Sequence record: NC_070957.1
Reading direction: 5' to 3' (one strand)
Length of the DNA: 64,000 nt
Shown here: piece by piece, positions 58,487 to 61,759 of the stretch
Numbering within the stretch: position 1 is the first letter of the stretch
Layout: every line of letters starts with the position of its first letter
Translations under genes and position numbers: made by a program
Notes under the pieces: model-generated
Databases searched by the model: none
The model's input: the letters and a program-made list of their open reading frames with translations, nothing else
What the model was told of the DNA's origin: nothing

Positions 58487-59155
58487 ATGTCTAATAAGGT
58501 TCAACTTAAAGCAGCACGGAAGCGTGCCGAACGTAAAGTAGCCTCCAGCCGTAAAAACGGTCGTCGTCGTCTCGCTATCCATCAGAGTGTTCCTCAACTC
58601 ATGGAAGCCGCCAAGAGCCAGATCGAACTCGCCCTGGAACGTCACCAGCTGGAGAGTCCTTTCGACATCGCCCGTCGAAGCGATGGTAGTGAAGTCCCTG
58701 CCATGGATAAGGGTGCTATGATTCAAGGTTGCCGCAAGTCCACCACCGAAGTTTTCCGGATGTTCAGCTACCTGGCCGCAGCCAAGTCCCTGGTCGATCA
58801 GGGTCGCATCGAATTCGAATTCAAACTGGACCTGGATCAGTGCGCTGCTGATATCGCTGCTCTGGATCGTCGCGTTATCCGTCTGAACGTTCTGGTAGAA
58901 GGTGAAGATGACGTCTTCGGTTACGAACTCATGGATATCGGTTCTACTCTGGAGAACCTGGGTTCTGTCATCTATGATGAAGTCTCTCGTCTTGAGCCGC
59001 AAGCTCTGGTCCTCGACAGCTACATCAATCATGCCGCCCAACAAGTCGTCGCTGATCCTGAAAATGAGATCGCCGACCTCAAGCAGGCCAACCAAACCGT
59101 ACTCCAATCTCTGGCGTACACTCTGATCAAACCCCACATGGTAAATAAAGCTTAA
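58487..59155 (+). CDS. Hypothetical protein with basic N-terminus
   Basis: GGAG SD, optimised codons. Confidence 0.75.
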   Translation: MSNKVQLKAARKRAERKVASSRKNGRRRLAIHQSVPQLMEAAKSQIELALERHQLESPFDIARRSDGSEVPAMDKGAMIQGCRKSTTEVFRMFSYLAAAKSLVDQGRIEFEFKLDLDQCAADIAALDRRVIRLNVLVEGEDDVFGYELMDIGSTLENLGSVIYDEVSRLEPQALVLDSYINHAAQQVVADPENEIADLKQANQTVLQSLAYTLIKPHMVNKA

Positions 59156-59166
59156 GGAGCTTTTGA

Positions 59167-60762
59167 ATGTCTGATCAAGAAAAACCCATCGACGTACTGC
59201 GTGCGGCAGTTCTTCTCGGTAAGCCGGACACTATTGGGTTCGGCATCCCCATCTTTACTGGCGGGCTCAAAGAGCAGCACCGTGTGATCCTGGAAGCAGC
59301 TCAGCTCTTCTATGCCATCCGTGAGCTCGAAAGCGAGATGGAAAAGAATGGTCGCACCGACCAGACCACACTGAACTCCCTCCGTGTTCGTTACACGGAA
59401 CACACTGAGGAACACTTCCAGGGTGTAAGTGAGAAACAACTGGCAGAAATGCTGGTGAACTATTTCACTTTCTACCGACGGACTCTCGACCGCATCCAGA
59501 TGCGCGATGATGTCACCGCCGAGCGCCAACACAAGCCCAATGCCAACGTGGTGACTACTCAACGCGGTCCCATCGGGATCATTAACAGTATCAAACCCGG
59601 TAAGCTCGGGAATCTGTCCATGAAGGACAGGATGCGGAAGAACTTCGCCAAATCCTCCGGTAGTGTGGATGGCTTCTCGATCATGCTGATGAACAGCCGG
59701 GTCTTCCTGAAGATCAAGCTCCCCACTCCCATGGACCTTCTGTTGTTGATGAACAAGATCGCCAACAAACTCTCTGGGTTTGGTAAGCGTGTTCGGGCGT
59801 CATCCCTGGAGCTGGAACGTGCACTGATCGTCCGTGAGGTTGTCGAGTTCGTTATCGAGATGGCGACCTACTGGAGTGTCTCTGACATCCTGGATGCCCG
59901 CGAACTGCTCAACGTAATCAAGGAAAGCGACGCCAACCACCTGGCTGTGGCAATCCTTGCAGCTTCTGCACCCAAAGGTCTGAACTACCGTATGAGCTGC
60001 CTGGCTCACAAGTGTAACTTCAGCGATGACGTTCTGATCGATGCGGCCAACATGGTTCACTTCGACAACGAACGTTACCCGGCGAAGTACATGGAGCAGG
60101 TCCAGATGATCTTGAACACCGGCCACAAGTTCTCCATCCAGGAACTGCATGATTCCGATGTTCCCTTCATCGATACTGACGGGACTGAGATCGAGACACG
60201 GTTCACCATGAACGATGGTTCCGTGAGCATCGAGCTCAAAGAGCCGTACCTCGCAGATTACTTCGAGTGTTTCGATAACGCCGCCGCTCGTATCAACCCT
60301 CAACTCCGTCAACTGGCTGTCCAGTTCTCTGAACCTGAGCGCTACAAGCGCGAGTACCAGAGCTACATGGGTAGTATCCGGACCAACAACTACACGCAGT
60401 GGGTAGATAAGATCATCTTCCACGTAGCTGCCGGTGAAGAAGGGGAAGACGAAGTAATGTCTCGCGGGGATAACCCGAAAGAGTTCGACGAAGGTCTGAT
60501 CGACTGCCTGGGTAGCCAAGAAGAACTCGCCGGTATCTTGCTGGAGCGTGTCATCAAGGTCATCCCCCGCCTGTCCTACACCAGTGTAGGGATTCTGTCA
60601 ACAGAGTGTCCTCAGTGCAAACAAACCACTGATGAAGAAGTTACCAAGGTTCATGGTGGTTATACCCCCATCGATCCGTTCCTGACTTTTTTCGACCACA
60701 CCCAAATGTTGATAGAACTGCGGAGGGAGCTGGCGATTACACAAGAGGAGCTTCTTTCCTAG
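59167..60762 (+). CDS. Putative virion/tail assembly protein
   Basis: 531 aa; C-terminal CPQCK and IDPFLTFF; contains slippery site. Confidence 0.65.
   Translation: MSDQEKPIDVLRAAVLLGKPDTIGFGIPIFTGGLKEQHRVILEAAQLFYAIRELESEMEKNGRTDQTTLNSLRVRYTEHTEEHFQGVSEKQLAEMLVNYFTFYRRTLDRIQMRDDVTAERQHKPNANVVTTQRGPIGIINSIKPGKLGNLSMKDRMRKNFAKSSGSVDGFSIMLMNSRVFLKIKLPTPMDLLLLMNKIANKLSGFGKRVRASSLELERALIVREVVEFVIEMATYWSVSDILDARELLNVIKESDANHLAVAILAASAPKGLNYRMSCLAHKCNFSDDVLIDAANMVHFDNERYPAKYMEQVQMILNTGHKFSIQELHDSDVPFIDTDGTEIETRFTMNDGSVSIELKEPYLADYFECFDNAAARINPQLRQLAVQFSEPERYKREYQSYMGSIRTNNYTQWVDKIIFHVAAGEEGEDEVMSRGDNPKEFDEGLIDCLGSQEELAGILLERVIKVIPRLSYTSVGILSTECPQCKQTTDEEVTKVHGGYTPIDPFLTFFDHTQMLIELRRELAITQEELLS
60687..60693 (+). 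promoter_or_regulatory. Candidate -1 ribosomal frameshift site T TTT TTC
   Basis: X XXY YYZ heptamer in correct phase; -1 frame is open to stop at 61208. Confidence 0.6.
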
Positions 60763-61208
60763 AACTGCCGGGTTCGCTCTCTCAATTCCAGAAGGCAGAA
60801 GAAGTAGCCATCCGTGAGTTCATAGCACTACAAGAATTAGAAGGGCTCGAAACAAGAGCCCTTTATAAGAAAGAGTTAAAGATATTCATGAAATCCAGAG
60901 GTTGGATAAGTGAACGCGATTCTTTCTCCATTCTGTTGTGTTATAACCGTTCTCTAAGAGAGTACACACACAGATGGTCACCCAGTTCTTTTGGTGAAAT
61001 GTTTGGGTATCGTGAGTACTCTGAGATCATACCGCTTAAAGAGTTTCTTACAACCCCAATGGCGGTGGTCGAGGATATTTTGGAAGGTGTCGGTAAAGGC
61101 CGCACCGATATTAAGAAGGCGAAGGACGCAGCACGGTCTGCCGACGAAAAACGTAAGGAAGATCCTGCAAGCATTCTTCAACGAGAACTTAATAAACTCA
61201 AGGGGTAA
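60690..61208 (+). CDS. -1 frame extension of upstream gene (or independent ORF from 60888)
   Basis: 66 in-frame sense codons with no ATG/GTG/TTG before 60888. Confidence 0.6.
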   Translation, partial: FRPHPNVDRTAEGAGDYTRGASFLELPGSLSQFQKAEEVAIREFIALQELEGLETRALYKKELKIFMKSRGWISERDSFSILLCYNRSLREYTHRWSPSSFGEMFGYREYSEIIPLKEFLTTPMAVVEDILEGVGKGRTDIKKAKDAARSADEKRKEDPASILQRELNKLKG

Positions 61209-61213
61209 TTTAA

Positions 61214-61759
61214 ATGGGTAAGTACATTCCGCCTGTTACCGAGCAACGCGACTCCGCTGTTGTTCTCCAGGGCGAGAAAGAAAAGAACATGGACACCTCC
61301 GTTGGTGTTCCTACCGAAGTTCGTCCGACCACACCGGTCGAAATCTACAAAGATAAGATCGACGAGTTCGTCGGTTTCCTCAAACACGAGAACAACGCCG
61401 GTCAGCCCGAAATCCGTGCTAAGTATCAGGTTGGTGTTATCACCATGTTCGATCTGATCCTGGGAATGGATTACAACGAGATGGAAGAAGTTATCGACCA
61501 CCTGGTCATTACTATTGGTAAGCACCCGCACGTCTTCACCAACAGTAACACCCTGGCACCGCTCTACGCAGTCGAGAACCGCAAGTTGCTCGTAGCAGCG
61601 TCCATCCAACGTTACAAGTGGTTCATGACCTTCTTCATCGGTCTGTCGAACAACATTCGTCAGCGTGCGCAGTATGTCGAAGGTTACGACATTACTCGGT
61701 TCATTTCTATGTTCCCTGTTAAGGCTCGTGAGAACCTCCACAACTACATCTATCGTTAA
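61214..61759 (+). CDS. Conserved phiKZ-like hypothetical/structural protein
   Basis: AGGGG SD, optimised codons. Confidence 0.75.
   Translation: MGKYIPPVTEQRDSAVVLQGEKEKNMDTSVGVPTEVRPTTPVEIYKDKIDEFVGFLKHENNAGQPEIRAKYQVGVITMFDLILGMDYNEMEEVIDHLVITIGKHPHVFTNSNTLAPLYAVENRKLLVAASIQRYKWFMTFFIGLSNNIRQRAQYVEGYDITRFISMFPVKARENLHNYIYR

Follow-up and report, generated by a model that had tools for sequence, protein, structure and literature searches.

A slip site near the end of D3_0073

The gene D3_0073 of Aeromonas phage D3 is probably decoded in two ways, with a ribosomal −1 frameshift at the heptamer T_TTT_TTC yielding a 680-amino acid (aa) form alongside the 531-aa form read in the zero frame. On comparative grounds we hold it very likely that a conserved programmed −1 recoding event makes these two forms, whichever of two mechanisms, ribosomal or transcriptional, is responsible. 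The gene lies in a stretch of 64,000 nucleotides (nt) (sequence record NC_070957.1; the window) that is the first 64 kb of the D3 genome (MN102098.2); over the 2,042 bases that surround the finding the identity is 100% and the coordinates agree. D3 is a member of the genus Ludhianavirus, now assigned by the NCBI taxonomy to the Chimalliviridae, the nucleus-forming phiKZ-like jumbo phages.

D3_0073 occupies 59167–60762 on the + strand, on which the parts of this gene and of its extension given below also lie, and is delimited by the open reading frame (ORF) list, the GenBank annotation, tblastn and a PHROG match. Its zero-frame stop codon is at 60760–60762. The slippery heptamer spans 60687–60693 in X_XXY_YYZ phase over codons Thr507-Phe508-Phe509 (ACT at 60685, TTT at 60688 and TTC at 60691), and the TTC, codon 509, stands 22 codons ahead of the stop codon. 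The −1 frame runs open from 60636 up to 61208, where it ends in TAA (61206–61208), and has as its first ATG, GTG or TTG the ATG at 60888. The sequence thereby matches an earlier note on this DNA, which had picked out an in-phase T TTT TTC near the end of the 531-aa gene and a −1 frame open over 60636–61208 with no ATG, GTG or TTG before 60888.

A slip on the heptamer would join the first 509 codons to an extension of 171 codons and a TAA stop (60693–61208), which is defined by translation and by homologous extensions in relatives. The product would have 680 aa, with the junction ...PFLTFF/RPHPNVDR... and a predicted tryptic junction peptide VHGGYTPIDPFLTFFR. The extension’s first 23 codons overlap the short form’s last 22 codons and its stop (60693–60762). 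Beyond this overlap lies a stretch that is annotated as intergenic (60763–60887), contains no start codon, and in the −1 frame encodes the rest of a predicted disordered linker together with the extension’s first helices. Annotation treats the part that follows (60888–61208), which covers most of the extension’s helical domain, as a separate small gene: the hypothetical D3_0074 runs from ATG 60999 to 61208 (69 aa), and in the sister phage LAh10 the ORF is called as LAh10_5 from the ATG equivalent to 60888 (106 aa). As the product of a −1 slip, the small ‘gene’ and the ‘intergenic’ gap would together be the 3′ part of one recoded gene. D3_0073 is itself annotated as hypothetical, and a join or ribosomal slippage is given at this locus in 0 of 24 annotated phage records.

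No terminator or promoter motif was found on the + strand between the zero-frame gene and the downstream part. An 8-bp GC-rich hairpin (AAGGGCTC...GAGCCCTT) at 60841–60863, inside the −1 coding region and 25 nt before ATG 60888, is listed as terminator-like on the minus strand only.

Conservation of the slip site

A tblastn search with the 531-aa protein recovered 128 phage records, including EL ORF047, OBP_093 and PHIKZ077, with 20–46% identity outside the Ludhianavirus clade; the downstream peptide adjoins the homologue of the 531-aa gene in 40 records. In PHROGs, D3_0073 matches phrog_4585, the phiKZ gp77 family (E 1.4e-73), and the downstream ORF matches phrog_19747, both of them families of unknown function. 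Full-length homology and conserved synteny identify D3_0073 as the ortholog of phiKZ gp77, a core gene of the Chimalliviridae.

We assembled 103 homologous loci, 85 after dereplication, which include phiKZ gp77, PhiPA3, EL, OBP, Wellington and CR5. The GenBank part consists of 17 divergent loci that together with the window represent 18 jumbo phage genomes, at 22–46% aa identity. In all 18 the −1 frame holds the downstream ORF, which shares 85–142 nt with the upstream gene, and an in-phase T_TTT_TTN stands 72–81 nt ahead of the stop. The same layout is present in phiKZ gp77 (T_TTT_TTT), Wellington gp51, CR5 gp40 and LucasX gp94, and the annotated PHIKZ076.4 is merely the tail of the phiKZ −1 ORF. 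Two scans of IMG/VR contributed 81 further loci. The first used a peptide pattern that included Phe-Phe, and was hence ascertained on amino acids and not on codons; it gave the heptamer in 35 of 36 loci, with extensions of 170–183 aa in complete loci (L053 is cut by its contig end). The second, which used mid-protein patterns and was blind to the slip site, gave the heptamer in 41 of 45 loci. Pseudomonas phage vB_PQ1 (PQ516283.1; L024) was excluded from all counts. Its gp77-like gene and the neighbouring genes are split into many small coding sequences (488 features in 184 kb), and the record looks like a homopolymer-error assembly.

A run of at least six T’s is present at the same Phe-Phe in all 85 dereplicated loci. 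The earlier note had proposed looking for TTTTTTN in phase among homologues, and the canonical X_XXY_YYZ phase is indeed kept in 80 of the 85 (94%). The other five have N_TTT_TTT: C_TTT_TTT in L057 (2943–2949) and G_TTT_TTT in PhiPA3 and three 201phi2-1-like contigs (L065:3090–3096; L066–L068). These five retain six T’s, shifted by one base relative to the canonical heptamer, and their −1 frame is open for 160–185 codons. They are useful natural variants for separating ribosomal from transcriptional slippage. Across the 85 loci the run has 6 T’s in 31, 7 in 46 and 8 in 8, and is never longer.

Codon usage indicates that the nucleotides, and not only the amino acids, are held. The first Phe codon at the site is TTT in 85/85 loci against a background of 30% elsewhere in the same genes, which prefer TTC. 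The base before it is T in 80/85, as compared with 29% for third-position T in general, and of the 38 Phe-Phe dipeptides elsewhere in the genes none is T_TTT_TTY. At every locus the −1 frame continues past the zero-frame stop, in all 103 it is open back to the T-run, and the extension is 150–185 codons long in all complete homologous loci. Because synonymous sites between clades are saturated, the conservation of the slip site reflects selection and not too little time for divergence; by these comparisons it is far more than chance would give.

These data also bear on the idea that an ordinary 680-aa gene has been split by a homopolymer sequencing error, or that the locus is a pseudogene. Homopolymer runs are error-prone in some sequencing chemistries, but about 100 genomes and metagenomic contigs, sequenced independently of one another, share the two-frame layout, and it is seen again in independent phiKZ RNA contigs. 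The short form’s own C-terminal tail is conserved in the homologue alignment, and no in-frame version exists in the protein search described below. Artefact or decay is thus scarcely credible as an explanation.

Coding signatures in the −1 frame

We measured selection within a related clade in which synonymous sites are unsaturated. Within the overlap, synonymous divergence in the −1 frame falls as low as 0.065, compared with about 0.5 in the flanks, and such low divergence is a signature of dual coding. For the linker, which extends from the zero-frame stop to the first Met, the ratio of non-synonymous to synonymous substitution rates (dN/dS) is 0.15, and for the domain behind it 0.12. Between D3 and LAh10 there are no substitutions in the 70-nt overlap. 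The two phages differ at three positions in 60765–60887, all of them third positions that are synonymous in the −1 frame only; the same changes are mostly non-synonymous in the other two frames.

It could be argued that there is no recoding here. The downstream ORF would then be an independent gene that starts at ATG 60888 or at a near-cognate codon, the T-run would be just a conserved Phe-Phe, and the open −1 frame would be incidental. Public annotations do treat the ORF as an independent gene, most relatives have an ATG, GTG or TTG somewhere in it, and in D3 a CTG at 60765 stands 12 nt behind GAGGAG. However, the position of the start is not conserved: the first ATG may lie at any point between columns 28 and 101 of the extension alignment, and locus L028 has it inside the conserved domain. 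Protein homology detected by tblastn begins upstream of D3 ATG 60888 in CF8, AH04, SXP01 and Survivor. An independent gene also fails to account for purifying selection on a linker without a start codon, for a −1 frame that is always open back to the T-run, for a TTT and a preceding T that are kept at synonymous positions although the codon bias of these genes runs the other way, and for a relative frame that is −1 in every lineage although the spacing varies. We therefore consider this explanation very improbable.

A profile of the extension was searched against 1.84 billion (1.84e9) representative proteins. It gave 72 matches, of which all credible ones are 61–172 aa long, and the called starts of the family scatter over profile positions 1–114. 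No in-frame fusion or other domain architecture of the extension was found among these proteins, from which we conclude that the two-frame layout is obligatory. Such an obligatory layout is expected if the ratio of the two forms matters. The D3/EL-type and phiKZ/Wellington-type extensions are homologous to each other (hhalign 95.7%, E 1e-8).

Taken together, the slip site kept at synonymous positions and the invariably open −1 ORF give strong comparative support to the programmed −1 shift and the form of about 680 aa that the earlier note had put forward, and the lack of a conserved start, the purifying selection on the linker and the lack of an in-frame fusion support it further.

Mechanism of recoding

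We propose that most ribosomes would read through to the stop at 60760–60762 and make the 531-aa protein, and that a minority would slip back one base on T_TTT_TTC (60687–60693). The P-site tRNA-Phe would re-pair from UUU to UUU and the A-site tRNA-Phe from UUC to UUU, with reading restarting at CGA (60693). In the resulting 680-aa form the last 22 residues of the short form, which make up most of its C-terminal helix, would be exchanged for a disordered linker of about 33 residues, followed by a helical domain of about 135 residues that ends at 61205. The shift would occur on the ribosome and not in the RNA polymerase, and its low efficiency would set a fixed ratio of short to long form.

Several observations weigh against this proposal. 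We did not detect a conserved downstream hairpin: the minimum-energy folds of the 70 nt downstream of the site are inconsistent across 39 loci, RNAalifold on 15 close relatives gives −3.4 kcal/mol with neither conserved pairing nor covariation, and the D3 downstream fold is no better than that of shuffled sequences (z = +0.76). An Rfam scan of 60500–61300 returned sub-threshold chance matches only, and no Shine-Dalgarno-like motif was seen upstream of the slip site. Stimulatory elements are common at frameshift sites, but sites that work at low efficiency do not require them. Since no stimulator was found, the site is likely to be a low-efficiency one, as in lambda G/GT. Most relatives carry an ATG somewhere in the −1 ORF, and a separate small protein may be made in addition. 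The support is all comparative, and the trans-frame protein is a prediction.

The T-run is also open to a different reading of the mechanism. A run of T6–T8 is equally a substrate for transcriptional slippage, in which the phage RNA polymerase would stutter on the T6 and add one U to some transcripts, so that the identical 680-aa fusion would result. Chimalliviruses transcribe their genes with their own divergent multisubunit polymerases. The run of at least six T’s is the only feature that all 85 loci have in common, and the five loci that depart from the X_XXY_YYZ rule still have T6 and fit ‘six T’s’ as well as a heptamer rule; the failure to find an RNA stimulator of ribosomal frameshifting points the same way. 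The known cases of programmed slippage by cellular multisubunit polymerases, on the other hand, take a run of about nine or more, which is longer than any run at these loci, and the T-run is set in the canonical heptamer phase in 80 of 85 loci. In phiKZ RNA sequencing (RNA-seq) contigs from four independent studies only the genomic T7 run length is found, which indicates that bulk phiKZ mRNA is unedited; this is weak evidence, as contigs mask minor variants. We clearly favour the ribosomal mechanism and regard transcriptional slippage as unlikely.

The same phiKZ data contain a small difference elsewhere in the locus: the RNA-seq contigs of two of the studies have one extra A relative to a PA7-type contig (L064:3561), just behind the first base of the −1 ORF stop codon. 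It is a strain difference and leaves the frame unaffected.

Protein features and models

The 531-aa protein contains two pairs of conserved cysteines that stand out as columns in alignments of 21 and 29 sequences. The first is C278 and C283 (59998–60015) and the second is C481 and C484 of a CPQC motif (60607–60618). C278, C283 and C484 are present in every aligned sequence, C481 in all but one (Kc263), and P482 is invariant. The two pairs probably form a four-cysteine zinc site.

The zero-frame protein and the extension were folded as two separate models. The AlphaFold2 model of the 531-aa protein, built from the 29-sequence alignment, is mixed alpha/beta (predicted local distance difference test (pLDDT) 76, predicted template modelling (pTM) score 0.73), and the slip site falls at the start of its last helix. 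In the extension model (pLDDT 68) residues 1–33 are disordered and residues 34–170 are helical, with the helical domain starting near 60792. DSSP analysis of the 531-aa model suggests that residues ~120–531 (59524–60759) form two tandem modules, in both of which the elements run strand-strand-helix-helix-strand-helix-helix-strand and a cysteine pair marks the end. From the model, an internal duplication in this protein is possible.

Searches with these sequences and models gave few leads. Pfam had no match for the 531-aa protein and 21 homologues, and a search of PDB folds with the 531-aa model (Foldseek, VIA-align) gave no clear match, the best (Z 6.7) covering a helical hairpin only. The PDB fold search with the extension model gave no match (best Z 4.5), and an ESM Atlas search with the extension returned scores of at most 0.81, which are noise. 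A word-based homologue search with the family alignment found nine close relatives only, without Pfam domains.

A possible link to T4 gp26 and gp51

A Foldseek search of the 531-aa model against BFVD places other jumbo phage homologues first, followed by at least a dozen T4-type entries of about 250 aa that are annotated as ‘baseplate hub assembly protein/chaperone/subunit’ (E 9e-5 to 1e-2, probability 0.96–1.0, target TM score 0.41–0.53, both query and targets being predicted models). A PF12322 cluster also came up independently in an Atlas feature search. T4 gp26 and gp51 are paralogs that both belong to PF12322, the Pfam family named ‘baseplate hub assembly chaperone/catalyst’. They share with the D3 protein a similar predicted fold and a layout of two cysteine pairs, of which one is usually CPxC, with Phe-Phe behind them near the C terminus. 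In gp26 the end of the protein consists of CPEC, 13 residues and FFELL, and gp51 has VFKLL at the aligned spot.

T4 encodes gp26 and gp51 in separate genes (gene 26, L061:2803–3429; gene 51, L061:3480–4229), and the FFELL of gp26 is at the position where relatives frameshift. Because the site in T4 gene 26 is TTC TTT, which is non-slippery, T4 would not frameshift here. Unlike in D3, the counterpart of the long form in T4 is a separate paralogous gene. The T-even-like genes retrieved with the gp26/gp51 alignment likewise have no slip site, and their genomes have a separate gene 51. T4 does make a second product, gp26′, through initiation at an internal site, and the start of gene 25, in the −1 frame, lies 1 nt within the gene 26 stop.

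In 25 distinct loci of distant T4-like phages from IMG/VR (L136–L182; for example L136:1830–2039) the gp26-like gene ends in ...SFF(G) or ...SFL, and T_TTT_TTC/A at this position stands 12 nt ahead of the stop and leads into a −1 extension of 62–67 aa. This extension shares homology with the C-terminal domain of T4 gp51 (hhalign 91%, E 1.1e-6). The same kind of slip site is thus present in gp26-like genes of T4 relatives, at what seems to be the same structural position, and the D3 gene is probably homologous to these genes.

Sequence comparison does not bear out this link. The PF12322 model finds nothing in the D3, phiKZ, EL and OBP genomes at E ≤ 10, and two matches in the T4 control. When the body of the protein is compared by hhalign with three family profiles (E 0.065, 8.6e-4 and 0.0044), only the cysteine regions (zinc knuckle) align, and against the single gp26 or gp51 sequence the zinc knuckle alone aligns. 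The chimallivirus extension aligns weakly with the gp51 C-terminal domain (E 0.0034 for the phiKZ type, 0.045 for the D3 type) over the SL-x-E-[FL]...P helix-turn motif, and hhalign of the extension against the gp51 profile is not significant. The D3 protein is also 2.5 times longer, and its extension has 171 aa as against 62–67 aa in the distant T4-like loci. In the D3 neighbourhood the gene pair does not lie between tube and tape-measure genes. Compared with known tail assembly chaperone families, the D3 gene has no Pfam match, and its PHROG matches are families of unknown function.

The link to assembly chaperones is drawn from predicted-fold similarity and shared architecture, and not from significant sequence similarity. 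For T4 gp26 and gp51, a published account of phage P1 speaks of ‘proposed roles’ as chaperones or cofactors (PMC9024508). A gp26/gp51-type hub or tail assembly chaperone pair is a plausible identity for the D3 products, to which we give about even credence. The pair would then work in assembling the baseplate hub or the tail, in the manner of T4 gp26/gp51 and, as a matter of logic, of lambda G/GT: the shared zinc-binding body would hold one partner and the extension would recruit another. We advance somewhat more tentatively, and at slightly less than even credence, the suggestion that the Phe-Phe slip site is ancestral to T4-type and nucleus-forming jumbo phages, so that the short and long forms of gp77 would be the pair that T4 encodes as genes 26 and 51.

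Genomic neighbourhood

D3_0073 is surrounded by genes for a beta-like non-virion RNA polymerase subunit, hypothetical and virion or head structural proteins, and a DNA polymerase. The same genes flank it in the close relatives L003–L014, and the upstream gene pair is retained in most other relatives. A 222-aa gene before D3_0073 (58487–59155) and a 181-aa gene after it (61214–61759, phrog_14374), both of unknown function, hold their positions in the same close relatives. More distant genomes have genes of similar size at these places, the similarity being by size and position alone. The two neighbours and D3_0073 may form one shared functional module.

Discussion

The proposed recoding follows a logic already known from tail assembly chaperones. 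In lambda G/GT and P2 E/E+E′ (Xu, Hendrix and Duda 2004, as cited in PMC9024508), as proposed for D3, a −1 slip near the end of a gene leads to one protein in a short form and in a form lengthened at the C terminus, in these systems an assembly protein. There too the ORF of the extension has no start codon of its own, the arrangement is kept despite sequence divergence, and the slip site of P2 is also a T6 run. D3 differs in that it has no sequence or Pfam relationship to these genes. The part common to its two forms is 509 aa as against about 130 aa and is predicted to bind zinc, the extension is 171 aa, and a chaperone role would be assigned by inference. The earlier note had proposed that the gene and its extension are the jumbo phage equivalent of lambda G/GT or P2 E/E+E′. 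Its frameshifted form of about 680 aa is well supported, but functional equivalence is just plausible: the predicted fold and the architecture like that of T4 gp26/gp51 speak for it, and the gene order and the lack of a Pfam chaperone match do not.

Two other systems illustrate the range of such sites. Human immunodeficiency virus 1 gag-pol uses U_UUU_UUA, a site of the same all-U heptamer class, and Kosakonia phage Kc263 has exactly T_TTT_TTA where D3 has its heptamer; the HIV-1 site is a eukaryotic viral one with a downstream stem-loop, whereas a downstream structure was not detected in D3. In Escherichia coli dnaX, as would be the case in D3, a −1 frameshift on the bacterial ribosome produces two forms of one protein (tau and gamma) in a set ratio. 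The dnaX shift shortens the protein, and an upstream Shine-Dalgarno-like sequence and a downstream hairpin drive it. In D3 the shift would extend the protein, and such stimulators were not found.

A search of the full-text literature, which covered papers other than subscription-only ones, turned up no description of frameshifting for phiKZ, gp77, the Chimalliviridae or jumbo phages, or for gp26/gp51, in agreement with the earlier note, which knew of none for chimalliviruses. Recoding is mentioned neither in the paper on the Goslar virion structure nor in the one on the core genome. What would be new here is its presence in a core gene of a prominent phage family.

Few phages are studied as intensively as the nucleus-forming phages of the phiKZ type, which are also therapy candidates. 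One of their core genes currently stands in the databases as a ‘hypothetical protein’ and an arbitrary small ORF whose start varies between records, and recognizing one recoded gene with two products would correct the annotation across the family. Proteomics, CRISPR/Cas13 knock-downs and transposon screens have treated as two genes what is predicted to include a single protein of about 680 aa. A recoded gene would also lend itself to simple genetic tests, with mutants that make the short form only or the long form only. Should the T4 gp26/gp51 link hold, it would join the chaperone logic of lambda G/GT to the contractile tails of T4-type and jumbo phages, and would explain why T4 has two paralogous hub ‘catalysts’. 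If the slip site is ancestral, the principle of two forms from one gene would extend to contractile-tail phages long thought to lack it, and would provide a direct handle on how baseplate-hub assembly chaperones work and on how phiKZ-like phages assemble their tails.

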